DNA from: Mizuhopecten yessoensis
Lineage: Eukaryota
Direction of reading: 5' to 3'
Length of the DNA: 64,000 nt
NCBI RefSeq assembly: GCF_002113885.1
Contig: NW_018408465.1
Coordinates: 3,128,060 to 3,192,059 of the forward strand
A model generated the notes under the pieces. It saw only the letters and a list, made by a program, of their open reading frames with translations. It made no database searches and had not been told where the DNA came from. The position numbers and the translations under genes are program-made. Shown in pieces: positions 1 through 45,514 of this stretch; the stretch's first letter is position 1; each line of letters begins with the position of its first letter.

Positions 1-1059
1 ACTGCACCTTTTGGTAGGATATATAGCCAAATTCAGCACTTTGTCTCCCCCGGCCAAGTACAGACAGGGGAGATAACTGCATCAACAGAGCACCACATCC
101 CCTGTCGTACGCTGGGCAACACCCTGAAGCGCTGTTTGTTCTGTCAATTGGGGCAAGTTAAAACCAAGTCTGGCTGGAGCCCGCTCACCAGGTTCCAGTG
201 TGCTAAATGTGGTGTGGCACTGTGTCTGGGTCAGAGGAGCAGAAAAAACTGCTTTCTTAACTACCATCGATACATCAGCGCTATGCCTATACCTGACACC
301 AGGGCGATGTCCGATGCCATGAGTCATTCCTTGTCTGATTTCACAAGTCGTTCCTTGTCTGATGCCAGGGGGATGACGGATGCCATGAGTCATTCCTTGT
401 CTGATGTCACAAGTCGCTCCTTGTCTGATGCCAGGGGGATGACAGATGCCATGAGTCGTTCCTTGTCTGATGCCAGGGGGATGACGGATGCCATGAGTCA
501 TTCCTTGTCTGATGTCACAAGTCTCTCCTTGTCTGATGCCAGGGGGATGACGGATGCCATGATTTGTTCCTTGTCTGATGCCAGGGGGATGACGGATGCC
601 ATGAGTCATTCCTTATCTGATGTCACAAGTCGCTCCTTGTCCTTGTCTGATGTCACAAGTCTTGCCATGAGTCATTCCTTATCTGATGTCACAAGTCGCT
701 CCTTGTCTGATGCCAGGGGGATGACGGATGCCATGAGTCTGGCAGGGTCACAAGCTATGAGCTTATCCTTTTCTGATACCAGGGGTCAGCATGTTTCAGA
801 GGCCAGGAGTCGCAGCATGTACACCCATCAAACTTTGGGAATGGCTATGAGTCACAGAATAACTTCCCAACATGGAAATGCTACCAGTGACATTGTGTCT
901 GTACATGAAGGGTGTACAGATGCCACAAGTAGTGCCGACCTGAAGTCGTCTTCTGGTGACAGTGCAGGTCAGAGTATGCTCTCACTGGGTATTCCAGGAG
1001 ATGCTGCGAGTCACAATGTGTATCCAGATCCCGCTCTTAGAGACGGAACAGATCACTAG
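1..1059 (+). CDS. Alternative terminal exon E1 (5' edge outside window): piggyBac-type Cys-rich zinc domain plus a long Ser/Asp/Met-rich repeat tail
   Basis: Frame 1 is open from base 1: ...EHHIPCRTLGNTLKRCLFCQLGQVKTKSGWSPLTRFQCAKCGVALCLGQRSRKNCFLNYH..., then SLSDARGMTDAMSHSLSDVTSR repeats, stop TAG at 1057-1059. Acceptor not visible. Confidence 0.8.
   Translation, partial: TAPFGRIYSQIQHFVSPGQVQTGEITASTEHHIPCRTLGNTLKRCLFCQLGQVKTKSGWSPLTRFQCAKCGVALCLGQRSRKNCFLNYHRYISAMPIPDTRAMSDAMSHSLSDFTSRSLSDARGMTDAMSHSLSDVTSRSLSDARGMTDAMSRSLSDARGMTDAMSHSLSDVTSLSLSDARGMTDAMICSLSDARGMTDAMSHSLSDVTSRSLSLSDVTSLAMSHSLSDVTSRSLSDARGMTDAMSLAGSQAMSLSFSDTRGQHVSEARSRSMYTHQTLGMAMSHRITSQHGNATSDIVSVHEGCTDATSSADLKSSSGDSAGQSMLSLGIPGDAASHNVYPDPALRDGTDH
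290..785 (+). repeat. In-frame coding minisatellite in E1 (about 42- and 24-bp subunits, about 66-bp higher unit)
   Basis: Repeated tccttgtctgatgccagggggatgacggatgccatgagtcat and tccttgtctgatgtcacaagtcgc; reading frame preserved throughout. Confidence 0.85.
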
Positions 1060-2054
1060 AGAACTACTAGTGACACGATGTGTAGTATCATTTGTGTAGA
1101 AGTAGAACTGTTTGTTGACAAGAGGACATCAAGGAACTGGTGACCACACATTTAAGAGAATGCTATAAATACTGAGGATGAACATGATAAGTAACAAAAC
1201 GTGACACTGCCAGGCTTTGTGCTCAAGGAAATTTGAACAGAAGTATTATGAAATTAAAGTAACTTGCATGTACAGTATCATAACACTTATTACTGAAACA
1301 CATTGTTACTTATTATCAATAGAAACTTTTAGTTGACACACAATACTGAATCATGAGTGTTCCTGTTCTTCACCATGACCATGAAATGACTACAGAAAAG
1401 TGTTTATATTAAAATTATTTGTTCAAAAGGAAAGTGTAAACTTTTAATTTGGCTTGTTGGCTGCATTGTAATAAGGACTGGTAGCGGATCAGCTGACTCA
1501 GGGTTGTCATAGGTAAATAAGTGTCATAGGTAAATAAGTGGAAATTTGCTTTGTGCACCTGTAACTGTTTCACATATAAAACATGTTTATGTAGGCACAT
1601 AGTAGGCATTATGTCGGGTACCAAAATAGGATCACCTTTGACCTTGACCTAAGTACCAGAATTGGAATGCCATTGACTTTTGACCTTGACCTCTAGTACT
1701 GAAATATAGGGTTACAGGCCAAAATCAAATGTGGTATTCATAAATACAATGGTATAATGATATAAACAGATATTGTGCACTGAAACCTCTATTTAGTATG
1801 GTTTTCATGTAAATAGAATGTTGGGTGCGATGGTTGGTATCCAGGAAACCTTCAAGTAAGTTAGGTCTAGTTTATGTAGATTTTCATTGTCACTGCTTGG
1901 TTTTGATTACTGCCGATTCAGTTATCTTAAATATACACAATTATGGAAATATTAAAAAAACATCAACAATATTAAGGTGTAAAATTGAATATTGGATAAT
2001 GTTCAGAGCATATAAAAAAGAACATCACTAATTCTTTGATACATGTTCACCTAG

Positions 2055-2254
2055 GGTTGAAGACGGGAGGTACACCGAGAAAACCTGCTCAGTTGCATTG
2101 GCCAACCAAACTGAAAAAACGGATATGCAAAGAATGTAAAAAGTCTGGCGTGAGAAGGGAGCCAAGCTCTGGGTGTGAAAAGTGTCATGTAAATCTATGT
2201 TTACCATGCTTCAAGCCGTATCATCATGCAGCATATCCGGAGCTGTTCCAGTGA
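2055..2254 (+). CDS. Alternative terminal exon E2: divergent piggyBac/PGBD-type Cys-rich domain lacking TKSGW
   Basis: Acceptor gttcacctag|GG (phase 1); LHWPTKLKKRICKECKKSGVRREPSSGCEKCHVNLCLPCFKPYH; no ATG between upstream in-frame stop (1997) and the domain; stop TGA 2252-2254. Confidence 0.75.
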
Positions 2255-2320
2255 CACTATAAAATGTACTTCTACAGTGATTAACGTAAGCTGTAATTTG
2301 ATTCAGTGATTGTATTACAT

Positions 2321-2411
2321 TTAACTCGTTCACCCCTGAAGACGCATTTGAACTCTTCCAATTCAATGGTTGAAATAGTTCACTGTGAAATTTCAGGGGT
2401 GAATGAGTTGA
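2321..2411. mobile_element. About 90-bp MITE family A (TTAA-flanked, TIR CTCRTTCACCCCTGAA)
   Basis: ttaa-ctcgttcacccctgaa...ttcaggggtgaatgag-ttga; homologous copies at 26637-26727 and (inverted) 28787-28877. Confidence 0.75.
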
Positions 2412-3157
2412 GGAAAGGAATTGTACCAACCAAAAGGTTTACATATGTGTCATAACCACCTAAGGGAAATGGTATATCTCCTCATTGCTTTATGCTTACA
2501 GTTGGATGTCTTATGTGATGTTGAATTTGTCTTATGCCTTATATTGACTTCCTGTCAAAAACACTTACACGTGTATGACACACCAAGCTGGTGTCAAGGT
2601 CAGCTGTTTTAGTGCAGAAACTTTACACATGTATGACACACCAAGCTGGTGTCAAGGTCAGCTGATTAAGTGCAGAAACTATCTGTGTAAACTTTGACCT
2701 GTCTGCATTGTTGAGTATATCCAATTATACAACAAAGTTATCATCACACTAAGTTGTAAGCTGATGATTGAGGTGGTGTACATACAAATATATAAAACGG
2801 TCCCTTGGAGTGGTTACTTATTAGTTTCTTGCCTGTACAGATTCGTAAAATATCGGAGGGAAAAATGCTGTAGCCTGTCTGTTTTGGTTAAGTAAATACA
2901 ATTATGTACAATATTGTCACAACAGAGACACTTTCCTCAGAGTTTTAAAATATTTTTCCCTGTAATCTGTCTGCTTTTTTGAGTAAACACAGGTACATGA
3001 AATATTTAAGGAACACAAAACTGTTTGTTAGAGTAAATACAGGTATATGCAATGTTGTCACAACAGAAACACTTACCTGTATTTTAAGTGTTGTTTTTTT
3101 TACCTGTAACCTGTCTGCTTTGGTTGAGTATTACAGGTATTTTTTTGCTCTTTGCAG

Positions 3158-3468
3158 GTAGTCTGATGCCATTAAGTCAGTGCTCAGTTAAGCTCCTTCA
3201 TCAAACAATCAATTCAGAAGCTCCTGATTTTGGGGATCACACTCTAGTACGACTGGAGAACAACAAAAAGATTCGCTGTGCATTGTGTCTAGCTAATAAA
3301 CATACGACAAAGTCTGGCTGGGACCTGTTTACTAAGTTTAAATGTTCAAAATGCCAAATTCCCCTGTGTACTCTTGTTTATGGAGGCAAGAGAGATAAGA
3401 GGAACTGCTTCGATATTTACCATAGACAATTGATGGGCATGCCCGTTGCACCAGAAAAACCATGGTAA
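3158..3468 (+). CDS. Alternative terminal exon E3: piggyBac-type Cys-rich domain
   Basis: Acceptor ttttttgctctttgcag|GT (phase 1); DHTLVRLENNKKIRCALCLANKHTTKSGWDLFTKFKCSKCQIPLC...NCFDIYH; stop TAA; AATAAA at 3512. Confidence 0.85.
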
Positions 3469-3744
3469 CAAGATTTTAAACAGTTGCTTTTGTGTAATAG
3501 AGACAATCCTGAATAAATTATATTCACTGAATGAGAATGAGAATGAAAACATGCACAAATGAAGGTGTTGAAGCACCATGAACTACACAACATTACCAAT
3601 ACAAAAATGTCCTTGTTGCTTTTAGTTGGAAAGATAAAAAAAAATGTGGATAGTAATTTGTACAGCAGGAACACCGTCCAGATTGTTATCATGAGGATAG
3701 TTAAAACAATTTGTATGTATGGTATTCAATGTAGGTTCTGGTGG

Positions 3745-4500
3745 TAGGTTATCTATTGTGTACACCAGGCTTGGAGTACCCTTGCTGGTGGAATGCGCCT
3801 AGCACCTTATCATAGGTTATTGTTTGTGTAAACCAGGCTTGGGAGTACCCATACTGGTGGAATGCGCCTAGCAGCTTATCATAGGTTATTGTTTGTGTAC
3901 ACCAGGCTTGGAGTACCCTTGCTGGTGGAATGAGCCTAGCACCTTATCATAGGTTATTGTTTGTTTAAACCAGGCTTGGGAGGACCCGTGCGGGTGGAAT
4001 ACGCCTAGCTCCCTATCATTGGTTATTGTTGGTGTACATCCGGCTTGGGAGTACCCTTACTGGTGAAATGCGCCTAGCACCTTATCATAGGTTATTGTTT
4101 GTGTATACCAGGCTTGGAAGTACCCGTACTGGTGGAATACGCCTAGCACCCTATCATAGGTTATTGTTGGTGTACACCAGGCTTGGGAGTACCCTTACTG
4201 GTGGAATGCGCCTAGCACCTTATCATAGGTTATTGTTTGTGTATACCAGGCTTGGGAGTACCCGTACTGGTGGAATGCGCCTAGCACCCTATCATAGGTT
4301 ATTGTTTGTGTACACAAGGCTTGACTGGTGGAATGCCACTAGTGCCCTAACATAGTCGGGTTATTGATTGTGTACGCCAGGCTTGGAGTACCTTGACTGC
4401 TGGAATGACTTTAATGCCCTAACATAGTCAGGTTATTTAATGTGTACGTGGCTGGTGGAATGGTTCTAGTGCCCTTACATAGTCAGGTTATTGATTGGAG
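3745..4500. repeat. Minisatellite, about 62-63-bp unit
   Basis: Repeated tacaccaggcttgggagtacccgtactggtggaatgcgcctagcaccttatcataggttattgtttgtg. Confidence 0.9.
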
Positions 4501-5330
4501 GAGAAAATTGCCTTTATTCGTGGAAGGCCGCCAAGTCTGGGTGATAATGATTCATGGCATAGTAGAGACTGTACAGGTGAAAATTGAGTATTTATTACAC
4601 CACACAAATATAAGGCGATTGTTTTCAGCAGGCTTTATTGTCATTTCTTGCTAGCTAGGCTTATGGTTCTGTGGTCTATATAACAACTTAACTTTATATA
4701 TAGGTGCTTGTAGAGAAATCAATTTCAGGGTGCTCAATTTTTATATTTCGTTTGTCAGTTGATACAAGCAAATAAGGCTATTTATATAAAATCAATATCC
4801 TCCTATGTTATGAAATATATTCCATACTGGTACCGATTGCAGCAGATGTCTGGAATTGATCCTGAATGATAAACATGGATGAATTATTTTTTTTTCACTT
4901 CAGGGCATATTTTGAGGCCATTTATGGGTAAAATTTCAGCCCCATTTCTAATGGAAAATTGTGCAATTTTCCCCCAAAATCTTTTCAAAGTTTTCAAATA
5001 TGAAGTGTTATTTTTTAGCTTGTATTCAGATGACAGTCCAGCATTTTACATGAAAAATGAGATAAAATAAAAATCATTGTTTGGTATGCAATTTTCCCTG
5101 TTTAAAAGCCACAGGTGCCATTGCCTATTAAAGGGGGTGGGGATGTACTGGTCATGACCAGGTTCAGGGATAACAGCATGTCTGTCCTATTGATAATGAC
5201 AGATATGTTTGTGTCCTTGTGGATGACTACCTCCTATGTCTGTGTCCGTGTATATGTAGTTTCCTTACCGTTTTGGTGTCATAGTGGTTTTAGTACATAA
5301 TTTAACAGGTATTTTTTTGGTTCTTTGCAG

Positions 5331-5737
5331 GTAGAGAGATGGCGTTAGGTCAGTACTCCTTTCAGGCCCTTCATCAATCTATGTATTCAGAGGCTACCGA
5401 TTTTGGGGATCATACTATCATACGAACAGAGGGCAACAAAAACATACGCTGTGTGCTGTGTCAGGCTAATAAAAGTACCACAAAGTCCGGCTGGGACTCG
5501 TTCACCAAGTTCAAATGTTTGAAATGTCAGATTCCCTTGTGTACCACCGTATATGGAGGTAGGAAGAGAAAGAACTGTTTTGATATTTATCACCGACAGT
5601 TGATGGGGATGCCCCCTATGACCCCTGCTCCCAATGTGCCCCAGCAACCATGGCAACAATTGGCTTGGCAACAAGAATCCGGGCTAGATGTGTCGGCCTC
5701 TGTGGTGTATGATGCTAATAGACCTAACCCGAAATAG
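5331..5737 (+). CDS. Alternative terminal exon E4: piggyBac-type Cys-rich domain (close paralogue of E3)
   Basis: Acceptor tttttttggttctttgcag|GT (phase 1); DFGDHTIIRTEGNKNIRCVLCQANKSTTKSGWDSFTKFKCLKCQIPLC...NCFDIYHRQLMGMP; stop TAG. Confidence 0.85.
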
Positions 5738-6978
5738 TCATTTCATACTTTCGGAGTGTGTTGGTGTCTATATATGTTGTTCATTAAGTGTTTTTGTAGT
5801 TTGGACATGCCTGTATAACTTTTCTTATGTTTTTCTGTCCATTGATGATCTTCAGAAGTGTTTATTCAGGAGAGAGAGAGAATGCATGGTCTAGGGGAAT
5901 GCCCCCGAGATTCAGAAACTGACTGTAATTCTGATCGTTATCACATATTCCATGGTTACTTGATGTGCGAGGGATTTGTGACTGTATAATTGTAATTGAA
6001 GTGTAAATAGTGTCGCCACCTATAAACAGAGTGGTCATTTTGTTTTGTGGGATACAGAGGGTGTTGTTTGTATAGAAATAAAATGTAACTTCGACTTGTT
6101 CCAACACAATTGCAATCACTGGTGAAAAATGGCATGACTACCATCACTGTGTAACGCAAGTATATCCTGAAACAGTCGTAGATGTTGGATGTGTATTTGT
6201 ATACATGAACGTTACTGTCACATCCAAATGTTAATAAGATTACCAGGGCAATGTCACCTAGCTAACACCATGTAAATAACTAAAATTAACATGAGTAGTA
6301 TCTTGTTTTTGTCATAATTTCATAATTTCAATAAAATATTCATTGCTACAAAATGTTTGTTAGTATTTTTTTTTGTAGCATTTCAGAATATGAGAATTCT
6401 GTGTCTTTAAGTTATGTACTTGTTTTCTTGCTTAAAGGGGAATAACTCTTGTTCATTAACAAATAGTCTGCTCTGCTTTCTCATTACAAGGGGCATAACT
6501 CTTATTGATTCCCATGTTTCATTGAGAAACATCTCTCGAAGGTGTTTATATTTCGATAACCTTATTTTTACTGCACATAAGGTTCTTGTGGTTGAGTGTC
6601 TGAGGCATTAGGTTTTCATATTTAAATCCACTCAATTCCAATAAATCTTAAAGAAAGCCAATAAGGTGTTGTTTACAAGGATGTATCAAATTTACATGAA
6701 ATTATTAACTGCTATATAAACTAAACAAATGCATATACTCTACAAGCATGATCGCTATGGTGATGAAGGAGGTTGGAAGGTGCACATTTTTTCTGTTTAA
6801 TGATGTCTTTTAGGCCGTTTTGCAATAAATCAATCTGTTTTTTTAATCTTAAGAAATGAAGGCATATATTAGTCTGATACTTTAAGATTGAAATGGGTAG
6901 TCCAAACACGAAACAAAAGCTAGCCATGTTACACAGTTGTACAATACTGTACTGACTCTATTTTCTGGATTTTTGCAG

Positions 6979-7409
6979 GCCCCTTTACTCGTCTGGGTGT
7001 GCCTGAACGTATGTCCCTACCCGGGGAACTCCAGATGCTACCTGGGTTTGCTAGGGCCTTTCCAATCCTACCAGGGTTATCGGGGGATGTTCTAAAGCAG
7101 CCCGATTTTTCGGGTGAATTCCAGACCCCACACATGATTGGAGTCCGAGAGGAACATGTGCCGGTTCGTGTGGAGGACAATAAGAAAGTGCGCTGTGTTC
7201 TGTGTCAGCTCAATAACCGCACGACCCAAGCGGGATGGGCCATCTTCAGTAAATACAGATGTGCCAAATGCCATGCAGCACTGTGTATTCTCACACCCCG
7301 CAGTAAAAGGATGCGCAATTGTTTCGACACATATCATGACCAGTTATTCGGGACTGACCCTGATAGGAGCAGAAACACCTGTACCTATGGGGTTCTGGGT
7401 GATCAATAA
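6979..7409 (+). CDS. Alternative terminal exon E5: Pro-rich linker plus piggyBac-type Cys-rich domain
   Basis: Acceptor ttttctggatttttgcag|GC (phase 1); EHVPVRVEDNKKVRCVLCQLNNRTTQAGWAIFSKYRCAKCHAALC...NCFDTYH; stop TAA. Confidence 0.85.
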
Positions 7410-8965
7410 GTTTTACACTGAAACGGAAGTAGTCGTCAAGTTCGAGAAGAGTTGTCTATTTGCTATGAAGCACAAGGGCTGATTGGACATGTAAAGATTG
7501 ATGTTGGTCACAGCACATATCTCTTGATGTTGTGTGTCATGTTATTGTTGTGTGTTATTTGTTGAAGACAAATTATGATACAACAGCGCCAAATTGGACA
7601 TTTACAGAATCTTCTGTGAAAATGAACATGACTATTAGTAGAAAGTTTAAATGTGTGTCCTGGGTTTTGTAACGTGTTAATCCCAACTTATAATGTAGAT
7701 CTAGCTCAATGAAGATGGCTTCAGCTACATGGAAATGTTCCATGTGAATTGCTTGGGAACTGGCAGCAGAGCATAACCTTAAAAAATAAACTCATAACAA
7801 AAACATACAAAACTACAAATTGTTCACCATGTAGAGCAAAAACGTGTTTTAGGTTAACATAATTATTATTATATCAAGCAACATGACGTAAGATGGGGTT
7901 AACTGTTATTGGTTATTGTTACAAAGCCTTGTTGAACTCTGGGTTTACTTGGAAGTCTAAACAGAATCAGAACCTTGATGTACACTTTTTTCCCCCCCGA
8001 GAGTGACTGACAACCATACTTTTCAGTGATATGGCTGTACCAGTGGTACCCTAGGTATTTTGGTATGAGGTATACCTGTATGTATTGTACATTAGATAAT
8101 TTGTATTGGTCAGAGCCCATACTTACATTGCGTCTCTTCTAATCTTTTTACGTGTGCCGTATGTTTATTAGAATTTGATTTAAAGAAAGTTGTAGGAAAG
8201 GTTAGTAACATAAAAATTGTTCGCGCTCTTGAGTCGTCGAGGTGTAGTGGCAAAGTATGACTAGAGGCTACAGGTAAATCACAGGCTATTAATGCGTCAA
8301 GAAGCTATGTATGAATTTGACCATGGACTTGTGAAATGCTGTTTTGGAGCTTTATTACTACATGGGGGAAATTCGGATAACCGAAAAACCAAGCCTTTGT
8401 CAAAGGTTCGTAAATGACTGCCAAACACAATTGTATAGAAAATTTAAAAATAAAATAAAATGGTTATAAAAGCATTGAGCAGAGAGAACCCTGGGTGTAG
8501 CCAGCGTTTAAATGTATCCAGTGTCAAAAACCCACATCCACATCGCACATATACCTTGATTTTTACATGAAGAACATACTTTGACGCAGTATACAGATAC
8601 CTGGAGGCCATGTGAGGATACAAAGGCGTGATAGCTGATGAATAATGTATCGTGTTTGCTTATATATGTGTCCACTATCATTTGATCATGATTTTCCAAC
8701 TTTTCCATGCGGGAAAAGTGTCTATTACGATGACTATTTTTCAGAACTTCAGTTAGTGTTGGAAATTTTTCCAAATTGCTTAGCGCTGATTAGGTAAAAA
8801 CCAATAGACTGTTTTGGACAAAGATACTGAACACGTAGCTAGCTGGTCATGACACAACTGTAACGCACTTAAAGCATGTTCGTATGTGTAAGGGTTATTT
8901 ATATGTATATATGGGTGACGGATGTAGGATGTCTTAACTGACCGGCCATCTTTTTCCCATTTCAG

Positions 8966-9279
8966 ACTCTGGGTACATGCCTAACAGGGACCCTGACTAT
9001 CTAAACCTTATGCAATGTTACAGCAGTCTGGCCATGCAACACCGACCCATCCGCAACGAGGGCTACAAGTACAAATGTTGTGTCCTCTGTCAGATGAACA
9101 AGGTCAAAACAAGGTCGGGATGGCGCGTGTACACGCATTTCAAATGTGAACGATGCAATGTGCCCCTTTGTGTTCGGGAGAGGAACTGTTTCCTGGAATA
9201 TCATAACATGATGTTCAATGACAGGAAGCAGGAAAGTTCCCACATACCACTTCCTCCATGGAAAATCAACAACTCCTAG
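8966..9279 (+). CDS. Alternative terminal exon E6: piggyBac-type Cys-rich domain
   Basis: Acceptor ctttttcccatttcag|AC (phase 1); QHRPIRNEGYKYKCCVLCQMNKVKTRSGWRVYTHFKCERCNVPLCVRERNCFLEYH; stop TAG. Confidence 0.85.
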
Positions 9280-10632
9280 GCTGGTTCTAATACCAGGTCG
9301 TAACTCCTGGGCTGACTCTAGTTCCAGGGTCCTTGCCTCTGCTCCATTTTCAGTGGGACATCGAACTAACAATACCACCGTGTAGGTGACCTTTGTCTCC
9401 TGTGATTGAACTAAAAAAAAATACTGCCATTTAGGTGACCTTTGATCCCTATGACAATCAAGATATATTGCGGGAAACTTGGTATACAGATTCTTTATAT
9501 GTATAGTTATAGAATAGTTTTTGAATTGTCGGCATGCCAATGGAATATGCACCTACTGGTTGAGAAATTCTTTTGAAAAATGCATTATAAAGACTCTGAA
9601 TGTTTATTTCAAACCTTGGAGTTAAGTAACCAGATATGTGTGATGCTTGACCTGGTACCCGTATGGGTGATGATACTGTATCCATTTACAAGGCTACCGG
9701 CCTAGCTTTTGTATCCTTACCAACCCGTCTGTTCGAGCAGAAGTTTATGGTGAAGACACTGATGCCCAGGTGTTTACTGTCGTATTCAGCGGGAGATTGT
9801 TGGTGAAAGTACACTTGTATATGTTCGTAGCTGTTGGTGAAAGTACACTTGTATATGTTCGTAGCTGTTGGTGAACGTACACTTGTATATGTTCGTAGGA
9901 TCTATCTCTTGTTTACCAATTAATTTAGAAAGTTCCTACTTTTCACCATCTTAGATTTTACCACAGGTGATACCAGAGTATGGCTACATATGAAATAAGC
10001 ATTGTGTAAATATACTCCAGACATAATTCTTGACACCCAATGAGTTCCTACCTTGATTTCAAATTGATCAGATCACGATAGTACTACTGCGATACTGTCT
10101 TTACTCAAGATTTTTATGATTTTACCATTAAAAGTTTAATTTTTAGCTTTTTTTATTTCCCTTTTCTCCTTCATTTGTATTGATTCCTGCTCATGGTAAT
10201 TGAAAACGTCTCCTTAGCAACACTGTAGACTGTTTGGGACAATAACATGGAGAACAAGCTACCTTGACAAGGACATGTGTCACGTTTGTCTGGTACGAAA
10301 TGTTGTATATGGTTTTTATTCAATCAGGTGCTTGGATCAGCTTGACTTGATTTGTTTTCTATTATAATTGATGATTGTCTCATCACAAGTATAGTTTAGT
10401 TGTAAATAATTCTATTGGTTTTTCTGTAGAGTGGAGCCACGACCACACATCAATAAAACGCACACGGACAGCAAATGGTAGCATGCCGAATTACTTTGTA
10501 TTATATTCTCTTCTTACCTACAGTAAAATGAAAGATGTTGCACTCAAGTGTAAAACTATTTTAATTATTAAAAGGTATAGACAATCTTACAAATCCAAGC
10601 AACAAAAATAAAATGTGCTTGTTTATTTTCAG

Positions 10633-10904
10633 ACTGGACTGGTGACTGGCTTGGTAGGCCTGCCATGGACATAGATAGCATACCGGTATCGAATCACAGG
10701 CCGGTCAAAATAGAATCTAACAAAATTCGTCTGTGTATTTACTGCCGTCACAATAGAACGAAAACAAAGTCGGGGTGGAAGGTGTATACGTCATACCGGT
10801 GTGACACCTGTCAGCTCGCGCTGTGTACCACTAGAGAACGCGACTGCTTTCACATCTACCACAGAGCTTTACTTCAGTCTAAGAACAAACTGTTGCAGCA
10901 ATGA
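10633..10904 (+). CDS. Alternative terminal exon E7: piggyBac-type Cys-rich domain
   Basis: Acceptor cttgtttattttcag|AC (phase 1); NHRPVKIESNKIRLCIYCRHNRTKTKSGWKVYTSYRCDTCQLALCTTRERDCFHIYH; stop TGA; AATAAA at 11223. Confidence 0.85.
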
Positions 10905-13248
10905 AACCCGCAACCGTTAGTTTAGACAAGAACCTATGGCTAGGTTAGCGAATTCCTAATAACAAAAGGAAAAGTGACTGTTAAAAACCCCACTAGGAAA
11001 GGTTAATGTTAAAAACGCTATCATTGTCTAAATGGTCCAGAAACGGACGATAGCAATTGATATTTGAAATACCTATAGATTGGGGAAATCTTGTGCCAGA
11101 AAAGGGAACACGTTTATCTAAATGTAAATAAGAGTAATGTTGACTGTAAGTTAACAAACCTGGGTGAGTTAAAACTTCCTAGTTGGTTAAAACCATGAAA
11201 TGTCTTAAATATGGGAATTTTAAATAAAGTGTTCTGAATTTTTATTTTGTCAAAACATAAGCCTACATCTAACATGACATCAGTTATTCACGTCCATATT
11301 CGAGGTTATTGTATTTCATTCATTACAATGAAAATCTTTCTGACAGGTACGATTTCCTAAAACCTGAAAATATTGTGAATCTGGTTCGATTGTTTGATGA
11401 TTGGATAAAACCTGGATAGTTTTTATATGCGGGAGGAAATCCGTCGGCTACTGTTAGGTTGTAGAAAATACCTATTGTATTCAAGATCAAAGAAAGATAA
11501 CTCTTAATTGTTCACCATTTAAAATGACAACGTTAAGCAAGTGCGGGAAGTGATATATGGTGTCGCTCGGTGTTGACACTTTTGTGTCTATTGATATTTC
11601 ACAAAAGATTGAAATGTTGTATTACCCTTTGTATATATAAAAAAAAACTGTAAAAAGTCTGCTGTTGGCAGTGGATTTCATATTTTGATTCTGGTTTGGA
11701 AAGGCGGAGTGTGTTGCCTGGTGTCTATAGGATAGGCTGATGTCCACCGTAGCTTTTTATATATTTAACTGCATTCTGTTCATGTCTGGGCTTCCACATA
11801 TGTAAATATCCCATGTTCATGTTAAATGCCTTTCGCAGTATCTATCTTAAACCGCCTTTGTAATGCAATTGCTTTCTGATTTTATAATTAATTTGATTTC
11901 CTATTTTGGATATCGGACATCAAAAGATATAATCGGAAGAGGATTTTTTGCTTTGTTAAAGCGCTTCTCAGTTTGACTTGAGTTTTAATGTGTTCGTATA
12001 ACATTGTATATAAAAGTTCAAGTAGAACATGTAGATAGATATTGAAAGTAAAAATTGTGTGATTTATTAAAAAAAATATGTTAAAATGTATATATGTTGT
12101 AAATAGTTACAGAGTTTCATTAAAGGTATTAAACTTACCAAACGTGTTGTGATTTCTCCATTAATGATATTCAAATATGAATTATTGAGAGCTACAACAG
12201 TCGTATGGGTTGATGACCTATTGTGTCCAGCGGAAATCTATTTCTAACAAGATTCAATCTCCTGCTGGGCTAACTCCTGAGCCGTATTTCATACAGAAGG
12301 TCAACTTTGCTTACGTGGGGTGGTACATGGCAAGAGATGGTCTAAATACGGAGTATACACATAGTAACACTGTTTTGTGTTTAAGATCAATGTAATATAC
12401 AGATTTTAATATACACCTTTCAATTAACTGGTTTTATGTTAAACAAATGTGTCTAAATGGATGATACAAATACTTATGCAAAACATGGGATGGGCTTAAT
12501 ATGAGGCATACATATTTTCATGGATGAACTTAATCTTAAGCAAATACTTAAAAAAGAATGGTCCAAATATTAAGCATAAGCAAAACATGTGATGGAATTA
12601 ATATAAAACTGATATAATGAGGGATTTGCTTATACCAAGGTATAGGCTCATTGACGAGCACAGACGTCGTAAGGGATGGGTTTATTGGCGTAACAACGCC
12701 AGGACTTCATATTCGGCAAAGACGTTACAAAATGTCGGGAAGACATCTATCATATATTGAGAACATCTCGAACATGCATAACACGAAGTGGGCTTTAATA
12801 CCAAGTAAACACCTGCTACCAGTAACATATCGTTTTGACATCAGTGATACATATTTCCAACATCAATGATACTTCGTTCTGACACTAGTAATACTTTACT
12901 GAATTCTAACACCAGTGATGCACAGTTCCTGCGTCAGTGATACAGAGTTTTGAGAGTTGTAACATCAAATGTTTAAAAATGAAAGAAAAATCGTGCAATG
13001 TGCTGTGGAGTCTTTGCCCGAGTTAAGTGATACAGTTATTCACAGGATATAAATTGTCTGCTGTTTAAAGTAGACACGCTTTTAACAAAATCACAATAGA
13101 CGCCTAATTCCAATAACACTCGTAACTCTATGAAGCGAGTGTATATATTTGACTTGAGAAACTGAAAATTCATACAAGTTTAAAAGTTTTGTGTCTGGCC
13201 GATAAAATTTGAGCAGGCTTCTAATTCTTGTTCTTTGTCTGCTTTCAG

Positions 13249-13790
13249 ACGCTGCTCATCCCTATAACATTGACCTTCAGGGAGATAGGCAGACGGTAGT
13301 GGGTAGTGTAGTTAGCAGGCAGGGCATGTTTCAAGGTCAAACTCGAGGTCAAGCTTCTGACCACTGGGGAGTTCTGCCTCCTCATCCTGTGGGTGTACCA
13401 AGACTCCTTTCAGAAGTAAAGCATTCTTATGGTGTTGGCGCACAATTTCCTTACTCAGTTCAAACTCCTATGTTCTTTGCTGATGACAGTAATACTGGAG
13501 AAAAGAGGCAGTATATGAACCTTTCTGAGCCTGGTACTGGTCAAGGACAATGTTTAGATGGCTCTATAACCTCTTCCGGGAGCATGAGTGGACATCGGCT
13601 TGTAAGAAACACCGGGACGCGGTATAAACCCTGTGTCTTGTGTCAGTTAAAGAAAGTTCGCACCAAGTCGGGATGGTACGTGAACACGTACTTTAAATGT
13701 CTTGCTTGTGACGTGCCACTGTGTAAAAGTCCTTTAAGGGACTGTTTCCGGCAGTACCATAACTATATTGAACCACTTGACAAATCCTGA
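13249..13790 (+). CDS. Alternative terminal exon E8: long linker plus piggyBac-type Cys-rich domain
   Basis: Acceptor ttctttgtctgctttcag|AC (phase 1); GHRLVRNTGTRYKPCVLCQLKKVRTKSGWYVNTYFKCLACDVPLCKSPLRDCFRQYH; stop TGA; AATAAA at 13925. Confidence 0.85.
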
Positions 13791-15774
13791 TTCTGCTTGT
13801 GTTTTCTTCATAACAGAAACGTTTTCACAAGATCACAGCTGTTATGGAACCAATAGGTAAACCATATTTTGGACATTTCTTATTAATTCAGTTTCACACT
13901 ACCTAAAAAATTTCTTTCAACCTGAATAAACATTTTTAAAGATGATTACTAGTTGAAATGTATAAACAAATCTTAGCTGTTGTCCTGATATATGTTGAGA
14001 ATGATTTTGACGACTCAATCTGAATTCAAAGTGTTATGGATAAAATGTATTAATGTGGAAAGTCTTCATTAAAAATACATTGTTTATATATGTATATAGA
14101 CTAATAGTTAATAAGGAAGATACAGTTGACCTCGCTAACGCTCCTAAAGGCAACTGAAAATATAAACACGATGGGCCTTGATTCAGGTAGCTGTCTGTGT
14201 AGAATATGTTCAACCGAATTTTGGGTAATACAAATTTTGGGTAATCGTATGTTGCTGTTGGAATTGATAATTTGCGGAACCTCCAGAGATGAAATGGACT
14301 TGTCCACAATAATAATACTGGATTTGTACGCAATAATACTCCTGGATTTGTACGCAATAATATACTCCTGGATTCAGGTTTACTAGTTTTGAATCCACAG
14401 AACATACATTGTATAGAGATCATTTAATGCTATTCGGAGTGACCAATATCGACAATGCTCGGAGTTTGCTACGTCTGGCCTAGCTGGAATGTCCGTCATG
14501 TTTAGACATTGTGTAGCACGTCAGTGTGCTGTCTATGGTTTTCAAGGTCAACACTGTTTTGTGTTTAGGATCAATGTAATATAAATTCCTTTTAAAGCCG
14601 TTTATACAGATTTTGATATTTCATCTTGTAATATGTGTTTATTTCATTTTAACAAGGTATTCAAGTCGTTCTGGTGAAGGATTCACATATTTTCTCATTC
14701 TTTAAATCATTTGTAATAAATAATTTATTTCAATACACTGCCTTTTGTGTTTATTTCATGTTTCTCTCTCTTCTTTTTAAATGGTTATATTTAACACTAA
14801 TAACACAAATATCGGGGTAGGTAAATATATAAAGTCAGTAGTTTAATATTGATGGTCACATCTTGATCAAGATATGGTATACTTTAATTTATCAAGTGTT
14901 CGTGAAACATCTTTATCCCACAACCCATAGGGTAAACCTGCTAGAGTTTGTAAACATTTCAGAAGTTTATTTTAGGCTTGTGGATTATTGATATATACTA
15001 GCCCCGGGTTAGTATCTAAAACACTTATATTATACAGAGATGCAAAACATCGTTACACAAACAGATAATTTACACTACCTTATTCAGAGATGGGCAATAT
15101 CAATACAAAGATATACTGGCTTATATGGAGAAGTGGAAACATCTTGGTAAGATACGATATACCCTAACTACAGTTTTGATATCCTTTGCTTATAGAGATA
15201 CAAGACATTGTTATAAAGAGATAACATACACCAGCTGCAACCAAGATACGGTATATCCTTACTTCTATAGCGTCAGTCCAACATGTTTACAAATATATTA
15301 TGTATCGCACCTAACAAGGAAACATAGGAAATGTTAAGTCAAAGTCGATGAAAATAGACAACAGCTGAAAGACGCCATTAAAACTTCATCATTATATCGA
15401 AGTATGAAGTGAAATCGATTTTTGAAAGTACAATCTTATTTAATTTCTTTTGATGCCATTTTATAAATTCAGCTTTAAGAGTTTACGAAAGTGGATTGGC
15501 TAGAAGATCTAGATAAGTAGTGCCGGGCGGAAATATTGACAGTATTAAATATTTTACCAAATTTTACATGGTTGCCTATAAAAACACACGATGTGGGCAA
15601 TACCATCTTCTACGTATTTATTAAGTGTGACATCAAAAAAAAAGTATCTGTTGAAAACAATATATTTGTTCAAGTGTTGGACAGAAAAGATGTATATTCT
15701 TTAAGATATTATTTTTTCATCAGTTTATCGCGAAGAATATTGACAAAATAGCAAACGTTATTTTAGGTGATGAT

Positions 15775-15995
15775 GGAGATTCAGTGTGTGGCACCAGATT
15801 CAATGAGTGGCACCAGATTCAGTGTGTGACACTAGATTCAATGTGTGGCACCAGAATAAGTGTATGGCACCATTTTCAATGAGTGGCACCAGATTCAATG
15901 AGTGGCACCAGATTCAGTGTGTGGCACCAGGTTCATTATGTGACACTAGATTCAATGTGTGGTACCAGATTCAGTGTGTGGCACCAGATTCATTG
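15775..15995. repeat. Minisatellite, about 20-bp unit
   Basis: Repeated gtggcaccagattcagtgt / gtggcaccagattcaatga variants. Confidence 0.85.
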
Positions 15996-16311
15996 TTTTT
16001 GTACGTCTACATTTGGTGGATGCTGTTGTATCGGTATACCTTTGGTTAAGAAAGCTTAGAATATGCAGTTTACGTAATAGTTCCGTACAGCAAGCCTTTT
16101 GATTGACGGCCATCATTGACATGTTCACCACTGTACAGTACACTAGCTACCACAGAGGTCATAAACACATAACCGTGATGATGATGTCCCAGGTGCTGTA
16201 TATACCCTCACAAGGACACAGTAAACCTTGACGGAGAGGTGGTAAAGACATTCACCAAGATATAGTGTACTTCCGAGAGGAATGGTAGGCACTTTACCAA
16301 GGCAATAGAAT

Positions 16312-17602
16312 CTCCGGTATACAGAGGTGATTGTCCGGTATACAGAGGTGATTGTCTGATATACAGAGGAGATTGTCTGATATACAGAGGTGATTGTCCA
16401 GTATACAGAGGTTTTTGTCTGGTATACAGAGGTGATTGTCCGGTATAGAGAGGTGATTGTCCGGTATACAGAGGTGTTTGTCCGGTATACAGAGGTGATT
16501 GTCTGATATATAGAGGTGATTGTCTGGTATACAGAGGTGATTGTCCGGTATAGAGAGGTGATTGTCCGGTATACAGAGGTAATTGTCCAGTATACAGAGG
16601 TGATTGTCTGATATACGGAGTTGATTGTCCGGTTTACAGAGGTTATTGTCCGGTATACAGAGGGGATTGTCTGATATACAGAGGTGATTGTCCGGTATAC
16701 AGAGGGTATTGTCCGGTATACAGAGGGGATTGTCAGGTAAATAGAGGTGATTGTCCGGTATACAGAGGTAATATCCAGTATGCAGAGGTGATTGTCGGCT
16801 AAACAGAGGTAATTAAATGTCCAGTATACAGAGGTGATTGTCTGATAGACAGAGGTGTTTGTCTGGTATACAGAGGGGATTGTCCGGTAAACAGAGGGGA
16901 TTGTCCAGTATACAGAGGTTTTTGTCTGGTATACAGAGGGGATTGTCAGGTAAACAGAGGTGATTTTCCGGTATACAGAGGTGTTTGTCTGGTATACAGA
17001 GGTAATTGTCCGGTATACAGAGGTAATTGTCTGATATACAGAGGTGATTGTCCGGTAAACAGAGGTGATTGTCCGGCATACAGAGGTGATTGTCTGATAT
17101 ACAGAGGTAATCGTCCAGTATACAGAGGTGATTGTCCGGTATACAGAGGGTATTGTCCGGTATACAGAGGGGATTGTCAGGTAAACAGAGGGGATTGTCC
17201 GGTATACAGAGGGGATTGTCAGGTAAATAGAGGTGATTGTCCGGTATACAGAGGTAATTGTCTGAAATACAGAGGTGATTGTCTGATATACAGTGGTGAT
17301 TGTCCGGTAGACAGAGGTGATTGTCTGATATACGGAGTTGATTGTCCGGTTTACAGAGGTTATTGTCCGGTATACAGAAGTGATTGTCCGGTATACAGAG
17401 GTGATTGTCTGATATACGGAGGTGATTGTCCGGTATACAGAGGTGATTGTCCAGTATACAGAGGTGATTGTCCAGTATACAGAGGTGATTGTCTGATATA
17501 CAGAGGTGATTGTCTGATTGATATACAGAGGTGATTGTCTGATATACAGAGGTTATTGTCCGGTATACAGAAGTGATTGTCCGGTATACAGAGGTGATTG
17601 TC
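16312..17602. repeat. Minisatellite, 21-bp unit (ccggtatacagaggtgattgt), about 60 copies
   Basis: Directly visible tandem array ending about 215 bp upstream of the E9 acceptor. Confidence 0.95.
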
Positions 17603-26636: not shown

Positions 26637-26727
26637 ATAACTCATTCACCCCTGAAGACACATTTGAACTCTTCCACTTCAAAGGTTGGAATAGTTCATT
26701 ATGAAATTTTGGGGGTGAATGAGTTAA
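26637..26727. mobile_element. MITE family A copy
   Basis: ataa-ctcattcacccctgaa...gggggtgaatgag-ttaa; homologous to 2321-2411. Confidence 0.75.
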
Positions 26728-28786: not shown

Positions 28787-28877
28787 TTAACTTGCTCACC
28801 CCTGAAATTTCATAATGAACTATTCCAACCTATGAATTGGAAGAGCTTAAATGTGTCTTCGAGGGTGAATGAGTTAA
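28787..28877. mobile_element. MITE family A copy (inverted orientation)
   Basis: ttaa-cttgctcacccctgaaatttc...cttcgagggtgaatgag-ttaa; internal sequence is the reverse complement of the other two copies. Confidence 0.75.
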
Positions 28878-29675
28878 AAAGGAACATATTTTTTTTCAGG
28901 GACTTTTAAGGCATTAAGTATGTTTTAAGCGAAACCAATGTGTCTTGTACCTGATGATCTTTTTTATGAAATCTAAGTCATTGTTCCTGATGAAGATTCA
29001 AGTGAAATTCATTTCTCTTGTTTAATTAATTTTAATTGAAATTAAAATTGTTTTGCCAATTGAAAGTTTAATTGAAGTCAAAGTCTTTAGTGTCCTATAA
29101 CTTTGCATCTTTTCAAAGTCATTTACATGCCATCTTTTCAAGGATCAACATTGTTTCCTGGAAGGGGGTTCTGTTGTGCTGTGTTGCAAAATCTTACAGT
29201 TTTTAAGATCGTAAGAAGGACCCATGTTTTGATGAAATTCCATGGTTTAAGCTGTTCTATGCAATGAATGAATTTAACTTGGATTTTGATGAGGGGGACG
29301 TTGGAAGTTTCTATTCATTTGAAATTGATTTCTGTTTACAAAACCTTGTCATATATATCACTCGTGTTCCTACATGTGCAAACATTAAATGTGTTGTGAT
29401 TGTAATAAACTGTAGCTAGAGATAAACAAGGTGTTATGTGTTTTGTTTGCACATTAAGCGTGGTGGACCGGGAGGGACGCTTTAGGCTGAGGACAGCAGC
29501 CTGATTTTGAACATACAGTGTATTATAAGTTATACACGTAATCAGAAGTGCTTGTATGAAGAACCATGATTATCATTCTCATTACTGGTTATCACATTGG
29601 GTTGGAACTGATCATACACGTTTTAGTAGAAATTAAACTTTTGACCAGCAGTGTAAATCTAGCAGACGATACAGT

Positions 29676-29865
29676 TATTCCGTCTTTGCGTATTGCAGAG
29701 TTATCTTCTCTTGGGAGCAGGTATTGATTGTTACGTCACTTGTTTGTGAGAGAAACGTCATCAATTTTTGAGAAAACGACGTAATTTTCTCACACAGACC
29801 AATGACTTAACAATCAATACCTGCTCCCAAGAGAAGATAACTCTGCAATACGCAAAGACGGAATA
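29676..29865. mobile_element. Palindromic (hairpin) MITE, about 190 bp
   Basis: tattccgtctttgcgtattgcagagttatcttctcttgggagcaggtattgattgtta is exactly reverse-complemented at the right end (about 58 bp), with further imperfect pairing inside; TA at both termini. Confidence 0.85.
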
Positions 29866-30144
29866 GTAGGCAGAACACACAACCTAACATGCCGTCACCA
29901 GGTTATATACTTTGGACATCCTTGTACACGCATACAAACATACATTGTCTGTTTGCTTGACATGACGGCTTTTCTCTTGTCTGAATTTATCCTTTATTCG
30001 GTCGAGAATCCGAGTTTAAATCTGAAAATCATTAGCATATGTTAAGTTTTAAATAATATATTTTGCTCCGAATATCGGCAAAACAAAATAACACCATTGC
30101 TAATACGCAGTATTTGACAATTCAACTTCTGTTTTGGTTTTCAG

Positions 30145-30491
30145 GCAAGAATGCCCGCGGTCTGGAGCAGGTTGTTGAACAGTTGCGGGACAGACAGGGA
30201 CAGGTTCAAGGCTTACATCTGAGTTATGTCCCCGGAAGTTCCGTACAACACACCGCCCTGCCCTTAAAGCACGACGAATTTGATACAAAAATCCACCGGC
30301 CGGTAACCACCGCAGGATATAGAAAGCCATGTGTGTATTGTCAAATCAACAAAGTGAAGACCAAGTCTGGCTGGTATACCTACACCTACTTTAAATGTGA
30401 GGCATGTGACATCCCACTGTGTAAAGGCAAGAGAGACTGTTTCACTCAGTACCACAACTACCTAGAATGGGGCGGACACGATATCAAGTAA
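30145..30491 (+). CDS. Alternative terminal exon E12: piggyBac-type Cys-rich domain (close paralogue of E11)
   Basis: Acceptor cttctgttttggttttcag|GC (phase 1); IHRPVTTAGYRKPCVYCQINKVKTKSGWYTYTYFKCEACDIPLCKGKRDCFTQYH; no Met in the ORF; stop TAA. Confidence 0.85.
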
Positions 30492-32780
30492 CTTCACAAG
30501 TATGCTGCGAACATCCCGCCATTATTTTATCTTGAATGTTTGGATGGGGCGGCAATCCCACTGACCTCTCATGTTTGGATGGGGCAGCAATCCTAGTGGC
30601 CATACAAGTGTCGATGTGGCCGCACCCCAGTGACTTGACAAATGCTTATCGGAGGACATGCCGACACCACGTGACAACATTGGTATATCTATTGCAGCAG
30701 CATGTCACCAAGTGCCCTAACAAGTGCCTGAGCTGTTGGGTGGAAAATTATTTTTTGTTTTGCAAAAACAACACGGGGTATTTGAATGGATACTTGCAAT
30801 GTTCACAATACCGAAAAAGACCAGTTTCAAAACATAGATACGTGTATGAAGCTTTTATTCTTGTTGACGAAGATAGAGAGAACACTATTGAAAGTATGAA
30901 ATAAAACTGCAGTTTGGTTTAGAAAACAGCTTCAATATGTATTATAGTAGGAAGTGTGATTGAAAATAAGGACACTTGAACATACCACTAGGAAACCGAA
31001 AGTAGCATTTGCTCCTGATTTTCAGTATTCACTATTAACAATGTTGATGTTACAGTGTGTTTCATTGAAATAGAGTGTTGTTGGAATTTGAGTCCTGGTC
31101 GGAACAGAACACAGCCGTTTCTGTGCTGTATTACAGGACATATGTATAGGTTGTGTTATATTAAACGATGAAGCAGGAATGGTTTAGTTAGCAGTTGCAT
31201 TATAATCCGTTATTTTGATGACGCTAATGAATTGAATTACAAAGTTCCTATTGGAACATACGGCACTAATTAGTGCCATCGTGTAGAAATAAATATACCA
31301 GCACAAAAAGTACACAAGACGTTAGACATCAACACGACCATTAGACATGCTAGGAGACATTAGCACAAAGGGAAAGGCATCACAGACTCTACAAAAAGGA
31401 AAAAGAAGGTGAATACAGATAAAGTGGAAGGTTTAAATCTGAAGTGCACTGCATGCGGCACCCGTCATGATATCCATTGTCACCATTTGTGGTACCCATC
31501 ATGATGTTTCCTGTCACCACATTTGCCAACCGTCATGATGTCTCCCGTCATCACATATGGTATGGTCATGATGTCTCATGTCACATGTCACGGTCTCATG
31601 TCACATGTGACAACCCTCACGATGTCTCGTGGCAACCGTTGTGTATGATTTATTTCTTGCCAGGAGGATAAGTTTCCAGTCTATAGAAAAAAAGATTTTT
31701 AATTAAAAAAATGGATGAATTTCCACAAAACAGTTGCCGTCTTTGATAGGTATAACAAATAAAATAGTCCCTCGTTGTGAATGTATGATAGATAAATCTC
31801 AACCTGAGTTGGGGGTTGGGTTGGGAATGGGCTGGTGTTTGTGCATGTAGAGACACAACCTATTGCTAATATGTTCACTGACGATGTTTACCAACAGTTG
31901 TACCTTGTTTCTTCTCTGATTCGTGTATGTTCTCCCAATCAACCCTGAATATGTCGTCATATGTATTGTTTCCAATTATTATTTTCATTATTAAATTCTA
32001 TTGTGCTATGAAGTTATGTCAATGTGATGGCCATTATGACACATACCTGCATCAGATTTTTACCATGAAGGGTGCGGCTAGCTGATCATTTCCAGCTGTA
32101 ACAAGAGATAGGCTTGTGAGGAGTGTGAAAAGCTGATGTGTTTAGTGTGTAGATATGTTTCTTTAGACTTCAATCTATCCTGAACTGTTTGATGGGTCTG
32201 TTATTGTAAAATTTATTAATAATTTTCCGGAATTTGGGTTGAAGACAATCGTTCTGGGCCTGTGTGGACTGATATAACCCGAACTGCTTAAGGTCATGCA
32301 ATACCAAAGGTTAGAAAACACTTAATCGTTAGGTGTATGTAAGAGACGCATCATGTAATGCAATATAACAGTTGTGGAATGGCATACACTACATTCAGGA
32401 CATGGACCAAACATCTTGACACTGCATGGAATGTCGTACCATTTACCTCGTATAAACAGTGATAATTCCAAATCTGCTGGGGGATTACACCATTTGGTTT
32501 TTAACATTATACTGTCTGTCTGACAACGTTCTGTTAGATCAGGCCAAAGTCTGATATATATACATCACCACCCGGGTGTAAAGTGAGAAGATTCTGGAGC
32601 AAAAGCCACTGTGATGCGCGTCACTATTATGAAGCCATCATTTAGTTTGATTTACAGTACATACAGAAACAATCGGTGTATAATAGAGTGTATCTATATT
32701 TTGACCCAATGCTTATCGTAGTGACTTCTGTTCTGTTAGTATTGTGTACCCTAATGGTGTATGGTTTATTATGCTTGCAG

Positions 32781-33124
32781 GGTCGCACAGTCAAACAAAC
32801 GAAAGATCACGATATGGTACGGTCCGTCAAGGTGCCTACCCCCTCTCTGGTATTGATCATGGGATGGTTCAGCACTTACCAATCGTGATGGATGGACCGG
32901 GTGCGTACAAGAAGCCTTGCGTTTGGTGCGAGGTAACGAAGGCGCGGACCAAGTCCGGGTGGTACATCTACTCACGGTATAAGTGTAGCCAATGTGACGT
33001 ATCACTCTGTACCGGAAGTCGGGGCTGTTTCACCGCCTATCATAACAGCTACCTGGGCATGCAGCATGCTAGCCCCCACCATCCAAACCAACCCGCACCA
33101 ACAAACCAAGGACAGACCAAATGA
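32781..33124 (+). CDS. Alternative terminal exon E13: piggyBac-type Cys-rich domain
   Basis: Acceptor tttattatgcttgcag|GG (phase 1); QHLPIVMDGPGAYKKPCVWCEVTKARTKSGWYIYSRYKCSQCDVSLCTGSRGCFTAYH; stop TGA. Confidence 0.85.
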
Positions 33125-45423: not shown

Positions 45424-45514
45424 TTAACCCTTTCACCACTGTAGACCATAATGGCCTCATCCAGTTCAATGCATGGTAGAGTCTACTAAAGTTACATAGG
45501 GGTGCAAGGGTTAA
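45424..45514. mobile_element. MITE family B copy
   Basis: ttaa-ccctttcaccac...ggggtgcaaggg-ttaa. Confidence 0.7.

Follow-up and report, generated by a model that had tools for sequence, protein, structure and literature searches.

The scallop Mizuhopecten yessoensis carries a gene, LOC110459972, in which a constant N-terminus with a BTB domain is spliced to exactly one of about 36 alternative last exons, and about three quarters of these exons encode a predicted two-zinc finger homologous to the DNA-binding C-terminal domain of piggyBat/PGBD4-type transposases. Bivalves thus appear to have evolved independently the production of many transcription factors from one gene that is known from the fly genes lola and mod(mdg4). 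We analysed a window of 64,000 nucleotides (contig NW_018408465.1, positions 3,128,060 to 3,192,059), which holds the 3' part of the variable region of this gene. The original prediction described twelve cassettes in the window with a shared pattern of eight potential zinc ligands and a T[KRQ][SA]GW motif within an 18-residue segment, and this observation is confirmed. Its interpretation, that only the DNA-binding tip of a piggyBac transposase had been captured and amplified as host exons with T[KR]SGW as a family-specific signature, is partly supported.

Twelve C-x2-C-x18-C-x2-C-x4-C units were found on the forward strand (Table 1), whereas none occurred in 100 shuffles of the window. The two His and six Cys, together with T, G, W, L and F, are invariant across the twelve, and all match T[KRQ][SA]GW (ten TKSGW, one TRSGW and one TQAGW). 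The spacer between His and the first Cys runs from 10 to 14 residues, rather than the 10 to 12 originally proposed, because the last of the cassettes (E13) has 14. A further, different finger (E2) has a 12-residue loop and lacks TKSGW. All eleven complete TKSGW cassettes have a polypyrimidine-AG acceptor in phase 1 and end in a stop codon, but a systematic strong splice donor next to each stop codon was ruled out, as none was present except in exon Z14.

Table 1. Features identified in the 64,000-nucleotide window. P numbers are our handles for database proteins and X numbers are isoform numbers; percentages are amino acid identities.
Feature	Start	End	Strand	First Cys	Description	Support
E1	1	1059	+	133	Alternative last exon, acceptor about 8 nt before the window; finger at 94-267, then a coding tandem-repeat tail	Isoform P0305 starts three residues earlier, is 84% identical and has a shorter tail
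E2	2055	2254	+		Outlier last exon; transposase-type finger, 12-residue loop, no TKSGW	Isoform X36 (P0286); RNA contig begins at the acceptor; no orthologue seen
E3	3158	3468	+	3277	Last exon, phase 1	P0298 100%; RNA contigs
E4	5331	5737	+	5450	Last exon, phase 1	P0195 (X21) 100% from residue 579; RNA contigs
E5	6979	7409	+	7194	Last exon, phase 1; TQAGW	P0301 100%; RNA contigs
E6	8966	9279	+	9079	Last exon, phase 1; TRSGW	P0300 100%; orthologues 84-91%
E7	10633	10904	+	10734	Last exon, phase 1	Acceptor; orthologues in three scallops 74-92%
E8	13249	13790	+	13632	Last exon, phase 1	P0200 (X7) 100%
E9	17819	18084	+	17887	Last exon, phase 1	P0297 100%
E10	22987	23435	+	23277	Last exon, phase 1; the modelled finger	P0199 (X14) 100%; structure model; present in 14 probable RNA runs
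E11	25643	26049	+	25846	Last exon, phase 1	P0303 100%
E12	30145	30491	+	30330	Last exon, phase 1	Acceptor; orthologues 85-88%
E13	32781	33124	+	32918	Last exon, phase 1	P0290 100%
Z14	40032	40253	+		C2H2-pair last exon of the same gene	P0294; orthologues P0342 and P0359
Z15	42984	43195	+		C2H2-type last exon of the same gene	P0299 (X35); Argopecten P0323
MITE	2321	2411			91-bp TTAA-bounded MITE downstream of E2; high copy, encloses no cassette	Inverted-repeat search

The gene has at least 36 RefSeq isoforms, which share 577 amino acids encoded upstream of the window and diverge at a single phase-1 junction, as judged from the database isoforms from which the junction sequence was also taken. 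Of the 15 exons in the window, 13 are the C-termini of database isoforms, and RNA contigs from four studies start at the predicted acceptors. The constant part, which the original prediction did not identify, consists of a BTB domain and a low-complexity linker. The best 60 solved matches to the BTB domain are of BACH, BCL6, MIZ1, ZBTB and Kelch types, with BACH, BCL6 and MIZ1 dominating and no BACK domain reported. While gene models already hold these isoforms, we found no paper describing the system.

We also considered whether the cassettes are decayed transposon debris or separate small genes joined by annotation software, because many database hits are single-exon fragments and MITEs lie nearby. 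This explanation is effectively refuted by uniform phase-1 acceptors in three families of bivalves, by the RNA contigs, by one-to-one orthology and by purifying selection. Orthologues in four scallop genera are about 68-92% identical (55-81% for E1), as compared to roughly 35-67% between paralogues, and pN is far below pS between paralogues. Same-strand arrays were detected in the pearl oyster Pinctada (11 cassettes in 43 kb) and the ark clam Tegillarca (9 in 22 kb, all in phase 1), and oysters have isoforms combining a BTB domain with the finger.

Several lines of evidence place the finger among piggyBac-family C-terminal Cys-rich domains. All nine TKSGW cassettes tested passed the curated cut-off of Pfam PF13842 (zf-Tnp_2), scoring 24.3-38.4 bits against a threshold of 24, whereas E2 did not hit. 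An upstream His is followed by seven Cys/His ligands, a pattern defined in PMC8086355. A direct sequence search of PDB with one cassette found nothing and a profile search found piggyBat only weakly (E 0.17), but the predicted model of the E10 finger (pLDDT 85) has a C1-like two-zinc fold whose best solved match is the piggyBat domain (PDB 9c0f; Z 6.6, rmsd 1.4 over 51 residues, next hit 3.4). This VIA Z score is below the tool's level for a clear match and the Foldseek E value is 0.05. PGBD4-like transposase models matched at TM 0.87-0.90, aligning over 55-56 of 59 residues at 0.6-0.8 A, so that the long loop was probably inherited from a transposase. The finger shares with piggyBat and PGBD2/3/4-type domains a His-first ligand order, this fold and a long loop between the CxxC pairs. 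It differs from piggyBat in lacking a DDD core, in a loop that is six residues longer (18 versus 12), in the replacement of an internal His by Cys and in being present as dozens of diverged exons.

Two elements of the original prediction require correction at this point. [quoted passage not shown] Secondly, TKSGW is common but is neither universal nor shown to be family-specific. Only 88 of 147 hits are strict matches, other exons of the same gene read TDCGW, SKLGW, YRCGK or YPSGY at the same 18-residue spacing, and the comparison with transposases rests on structure models.

The claim that no catalytic core accompanies the fingers was upheld. None of 20 other open frames tested in the window (82 aa or more) hit any Pfam family, including the DDE core (PF13843), although heavily decayed remnants would be missed, and the isoforms carry a BTB domain instead. 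The only TTAA-bounded inverted repeats are those of three 91-93-bp MITEs, none of which encloses a cassette. The direction of capture is less secure, as an old host zinc finger of C1-like fold could merely resemble, or have been donated to, piggyBac transposases. In favour of this possibility, no transposase was among the long proteins of the top 150 profile hits, and PF13842 may itself include these mollusc sequences. No donor transposase sequence was retrieved: E2 gave no word matches, a profile search was swamped, no metagenome loci were found and alignments were too diverse for pattern scans. An unrooted tree of 71 domains resolved local duplications but not deep branches. We nevertheless regard a host origin as improbable because the closest structures are transposase tails, because TKSGW fingers were found only in bivalves among hits with a named organism whereas this domain type is widespread in piggyBac elements (PMC8086355, PMC11707139), and because E2 has piggyBat's 12-residue loop with R and E in register.

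Conservation within the loop suggests a different DNA target for each exon. Three positions just after TKSGW (loop positions 16, 18 and 20, which are 1, 3 and 5 places after its Trp) never vary among orthologues in the four scallop genera but differ between cassettes, with identities between cassettes of 0.08, 0.19 and 0.26, respectively, and 22 codes in 26 exons. Loop positions 10-20 vary in 0 of 231 orthologue-group cells, as compared to 80 of 567 elsewhere. Two of the three positions align with R543 and E545, through which the piggyBat loop reads the major groove (PMC11707139). This register rests on an ungapped anchor at the second CxxC; the HMM alignment keeps E545 at position 18 but puts R543 before a six-residue gap.

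DNA binding by these fingers is inferred, in the absence of binding data, with only indirect support from their charge and from the conservation pattern of the loop. The PiggyMac domain, with the same ligand order, binds histone H3 and not DNA, and its authors warn that the fold does not predict the substrate (PMC8086355). An alternative is that the fingers read proteins or histone tails, as PiggyMac and Tpb2 domains do, or act as substrate adaptors for a BTB-Cullin3 ligase, with the variable loop selecting protein partners; C1-like folds rank next in the fold search and the BTB domain also matches Kelch-like proteins. We consider this unlikely because all fingers are basic (+3 to +11), sister exons of the same gene encode C2H2 pairs and BEN-like domains, which are DNA readers, PiggyMac's domain scores Z 2.2 against 6.6 for piggyBat, and the variable positions fall in the base-reading loop. 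The dominance of BACH, BCL6 and MIZ1 among the BTB matches and the lack of a reported BACK domain also argue against this role.

Our favoured explanation, in which we have fairly high confidence, is that a transposase finger was captured without the catalytic core and multiplied by tandem exon duplication within a BTB transcription-factor gene. The splicing of constant exons to single last exons, each with its own stop codon, and the homology of the fingers to transposase domains are established by the analysis, whereas the direction of capture, DNA binding, the assignment of DNA targets by the three loop positions and the consequences of dimerization are inferences. In this view, TKSGW forms a constant hairpin turn, the three positions probably set the target of each exon, and BTB pairing would replace the transposase core in bringing two fingers together, giving a combinatorial set of homo- and heterodimeric DNA readers, as lola and mod(mdg4) do in insects.

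In these fly genes a constant N-terminal BTB domain is joined to one of 20-30+ alternative C-terminal zinc-binding modules, with at least 30 isoforms, mostly FLYWCH, for mod(mdg4) and 20, mostly C2H2, for lola (PMC11426971). Orthology to either gene was rejected. Their BTB domain is the arthropod-specific Tramtrack type, which is not found in Mollusca (PMC11426971), while the scallop domain resembles BCL6/BACH/MIZ1, the main module here is a piggyBac finger rather than FLYWCH, and there are three paralogous array genes in scallops. All 15 exons lie on one strand and cassette-to-cassette joints show co-transcription, observations which do not exclude trans-splicing. The original prediction drew a parallel with primate CSB-PGBD3, which is likewise a piggyBac-derived alternative 3' terminal exon fused to a host N-terminus (PMC2268245), but there one whole transposase was captured once whereas here only the finger was kept, amplified about 25 times and diversified, making lola and mod(mdg4) the closer analogy. 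Vertebrate ZBTB factors such as BCL6 and MIZ1 share the BTB type, a long linker and C-terminal zinc fingers, but carry fixed C2H2 arrays and are not known to have an exchangeable last-exon library.

BTB genes with large libraries of alternative last exons have been treated as an arthropod speciality tied to the Tramtrack-type BTB (PMC11426971), and an independent origin in bivalves, built on another BTB type and another transposon domain, would make this a recurrent solution. The approximately 25 orthologue-stable variants of one 55-residue transposase DNA-binding finger, differing at the predicted base-reading positions, are a natural experiment that could reveal the recognition code of piggyBat/PGBD-type domains, which matters for transposon engineering and for understanding human PGBD2-4. 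They may also show whether bivalves use such factors to read or silence transposon ends.

The two paralogous BTB genes use C2H2, BEN, DUF3504 and zf-C17orf113 last exons. A more tentative possibility is that this three-gene bivalve cluster is an independently evolved platform for capturing DNA-reading domains, in which over 100 BTB isoforms in one scallop (isoform numbers up to X36, X49 and, in Pecten, X26) carry interchangeable modules, several of them transposon-derived (piggyBac finger, DUF3504, zf-C17orf113, BEN), combined through BTB heterodimers. In this scenario the piggyBac fingers would form a natural recognition code at three loop positions and capture would still be going on, as exon E2 may indicate. 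A single-sequence model of E2 was poor (pLDDT 60) and was not used. The MITE downstream of E2 was rejected as E2's transposon end because it carries both of its own arms.

A six-frame scan identified twelve C-x2-C-x18-C-x2-C-x4-C units, all on one strand and each containing T[KRQ][SA]GW, whereas none appeared in 100 shuffles of the window. The original prediction of twelve such cassettes is therefore confirmed as an observation, with one small correction: the first spacer is 10-14 residues and not 10-12. Two His and six Cys are invariant, giving eight candidate ligands. A thirteenth finger (E2 in the series of last exons E1-E13) has a 12-residue loop and no TKSGW. Every complete cassette starts at a polypyrimidine-AG acceptor in phase 1 and ends in a stop codon, and two C2H2-type exons with the same phase (Z14 and Z15) follow the cassettes. 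Z14 has an internal donor 19 nt before its stop, and because isoforms in three scallops continue with a peptide encoded by Z15 in another frame, Z15 appears to be read in two frames. The tail of E1 contains coding tandem repeats with 24-, 42- and 66-bp units and is shorter in the database isoform, which suggests length polymorphism.

Coordinates of features in the window and of one Pinctada segment
Feature	Location	Strand	Detail
Twelve C-x2-C-x18-C-x2-C-x4-C units	window 133-33043	+
Tandem repeats in the E1 tail	window 299-739
E2 finger	window 2055-2254
Minor splice E2>E3	window 2285>3158		weak donor
Minor splice E3>E4	window 3464>5331		weak donor
Minor splice E4>E5	window 5558>6979		weak donor; one contig, depth 4
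Z14	window 40032-40253		C2H2
Z15	window 42984-43195		C2H2-type
First MITE	window 2321-2411		TTAA-bounded
Second MITE	window 44704-44796		TTAA-bounded
Third MITE	window 45424-45514		TTAA-bounded
LINE ORF2-like short frame	window 54889-55230		CxC..H..F.C pattern
Cassettes with a longer loop	L003 (Pinctada) 5000-17600		four cassettes

A profile search with the finger returned 576 hits at E up to 0.001. The long proteins examined among these consist of a BTB domain, a linker and a C-terminal zf-Tnp_2 domain and come from oysters, scallops and pearl oyster; one has two finger matches, while one Mytilus model is fused to an endonuclease domain instead. The window is Mizuhopecten yessoensis LOC110459972, as E4, E8 and E10 are 100% identical to the C-termini of isoforms X21, X7 and X14, all from residue 579. 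We retrieved 32 proteins of this gene (isoform numbers up to X36), which share 577 residues and then diverge at a residue whose codon starts with G, as a phase-1 junction requires. Of these 32, 24 carry the 18-residue-loop finger, one is E2, five are C2H2 and two look BEN-like. Thirteen of the 15 window exons were found as isoform ends, and the other two, E7 and E12, have orthologues at 74-92% in other scallops. In probable RNA runs from four studies, contigs begin at the acceptors of E2-E5, several with 24-27 further letters lying elsewhere, as expected of spliced exons. Minor GT..AG joints between neighbours in E2-E5 show that adjacent cassettes can lie on one pre-mRNA; the E4>E5 joint is in frame and would put a truncated E4 finger before a whole E5 finger. 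The BTB domain matches BACH, BCL6, MIZ1 and Kelch-like domains, with no Tramtrack-type structure among the best 60 matches, and the constant part is 45% identical to oyster LOC105323287.

We next examined whether the finger is a piggyBac domain. Nine of nine TKSGW cassettes tested passed the PF13842 cut-off. A confounder of this result was that the PF13842 model may include these proteins, and we therefore tested the structure independently. Among 48,161 chains, the AlphaFold model (pLDDT 85) best matched piggyBat transposase residues 515-570 (Z 6.6, rmsd 1.4 A, 51 residues); the next hits were C1 domains at Z 3.4, and PiggyMac scored 2.2. Foldseek agreed, though only at E 0.05. In the ESM Atlas, clusters of PGBD4-like transposases with DDE_Tnp_1_7 in 100% of members aligned over 55-56 of 59 residues at 0.6-0.8 A (TM 0.87-0.90), alongside a mollusc BTB + zf-Tnp_2 cluster of 97 members. 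The proposed interpretation, a piggyBac C-terminal Cys-rich domain with a family-specific T[KR]SGW signature, is thus partly supported: the assignment holds, but to the His-first piggyBat/PGBD2-4 class, which is not structurally related to the T. ni domain (PMC11707139). Intact transposase cores or terminal repeats around the cassettes would have contradicted this interpretation, and neither was found. The 20 other open frames analysed have no Pfam hit; a short frame resembling the C-terminal end of a LINE ORF2 likewise has none. The only TTAA-bounded inverted repeats belong to 91-93-bp MITEs that enclose no cassette. These MITEs have piggyBac-like ends, the first is extremely abundant in RNA contigs, and they are possible natural targets of the fingers.

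The status of TKSGW as a signature is less secure. The 18-residue spacing is fixed in the 89 such scallop fingers analysed, but the turn varies (TDCGW, SKLGW, YRCGK, YPSGY), and only 88 of 147 representative hits have a strict T[KRQ][SA]GW even though the profile was built on it. Longer loops occur in Pinctada, where four cassettes represent a lineage-specific expansion of a different loop type. In the predicted structure TKSGW lies between two bridged residues and so forms a hairpin turn. Near-complete alignment to transposase models suggests that the long loop predates capture, but this rests on structural models alone and family specificity is unproven.

Exons were grouped into orthologue sets across Mizuhopecten, Ylistrum, Pecten and Argopecten, with numbering from the first Cys. 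Positions 10-20 never vary within a set (0 of 231 cells, against 80 of 567 other non-ligand cells; Fisher p 5e-13, though cells are not independent). While positions 11-15 are conserved in nearly all cassettes anyway, positions 16, 18 and 20, alternate residues after the Trp, differ between cassettes (identity 0.08, 0.19 and 0.26), as does the residue before the first Cys. The 26 Mizuhopecten fingers show 22 different triplets, and all are basic. Anchored on the second CxxC, positions 16 and 18 correspond to piggyBat R543 and E545, which the cryo-EM study names as base contacts in the major groove (PMC11707139). The HMM alignment confirms E545 at 18 but places R543 before a gap, and hence the register of position 16 is less sure. 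Positions 16, 18 and 20 form a candidate recognition code. Paralogous cassettes show pN far below pS (E11/E12 0.06 vs 0.73; median 0.33 vs 0.75). Of 14 variants inside E3-E5 coding sequence, an incomplete set, only one, which is synonymous, falls in a finger.

Same-strand arrays were also detected in Pinctada imbricata (11 cassettes in 43 kb), Tegillarca granosa (9 in 22 kb, all with phase-1 acceptors) and two further contigs. Neighbouring cassettes are sisters (E3/E4/E5, E8/E9/E10, E11/E12), which indicates tandem exon duplication; some groups span species or paralogous genes, but deep branches are unresolved. Two paralogous BTB genes on the same scaffolds have their own libraries, one rich in these fingers and one (isoform numbers up to X49) mostly C2H2. 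Between them these neighbours also use BEN, DUF3504 and zf-C17orf113 domains as alternative last exons (proteins P0207, P0366, P0244, P0375 and P0372). DUF3504 derives from Crypton elements and C17orf113 from hAT elements. E2, which is expressed and annotated (X36), has piggyBat's loop length with Arg and Glu in register with R543 and E545, a very long branch and no orthologue among the scallop isoforms retrieved, an incomplete set. This pattern may have arisen through a separate, younger capture, for which E2 is at present only a candidate.

Our analysis shows a single BTB front end with one last exon per isoform, purifying selection on each finger, and homology to transposase tails. We infer beyond this that the finger was captured from a PGBD4-like element, helped by the exon-trap habit of piggyBacs (PMC2268245), although here a new acceptor just before the finger was needed; that BTB pairing takes the place of the transposase core; and that each exon has its own DNA target, DNA binding itself being an inference. 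Alternatively, and as the main rival to DNA recognition, the fingers may read proteins or histones, as in PiggyMac (PMC8086355). The gene works like mod(mdg4) and lola but does not share their type of BTB, which is reported to be absent from Mollusca (PMC11426971), so that convergence is the likely reading. Automated gene models already list the isoforms under misleading names. Literature searches found no description of the system, although most subscription journals lay outside their reach and prior description is not excluded; an oyster transcription-factor survey discusses other BTB clusters (PMC12111275). Relative to mod(mdg4) and lola, the gene combines a different BTB type with a piggyBac-derived finger. 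Octopus THAP and CENPB factors are reported to carry BTB domains (PMC10027918), which may reflect a related capture system in cephalopods.
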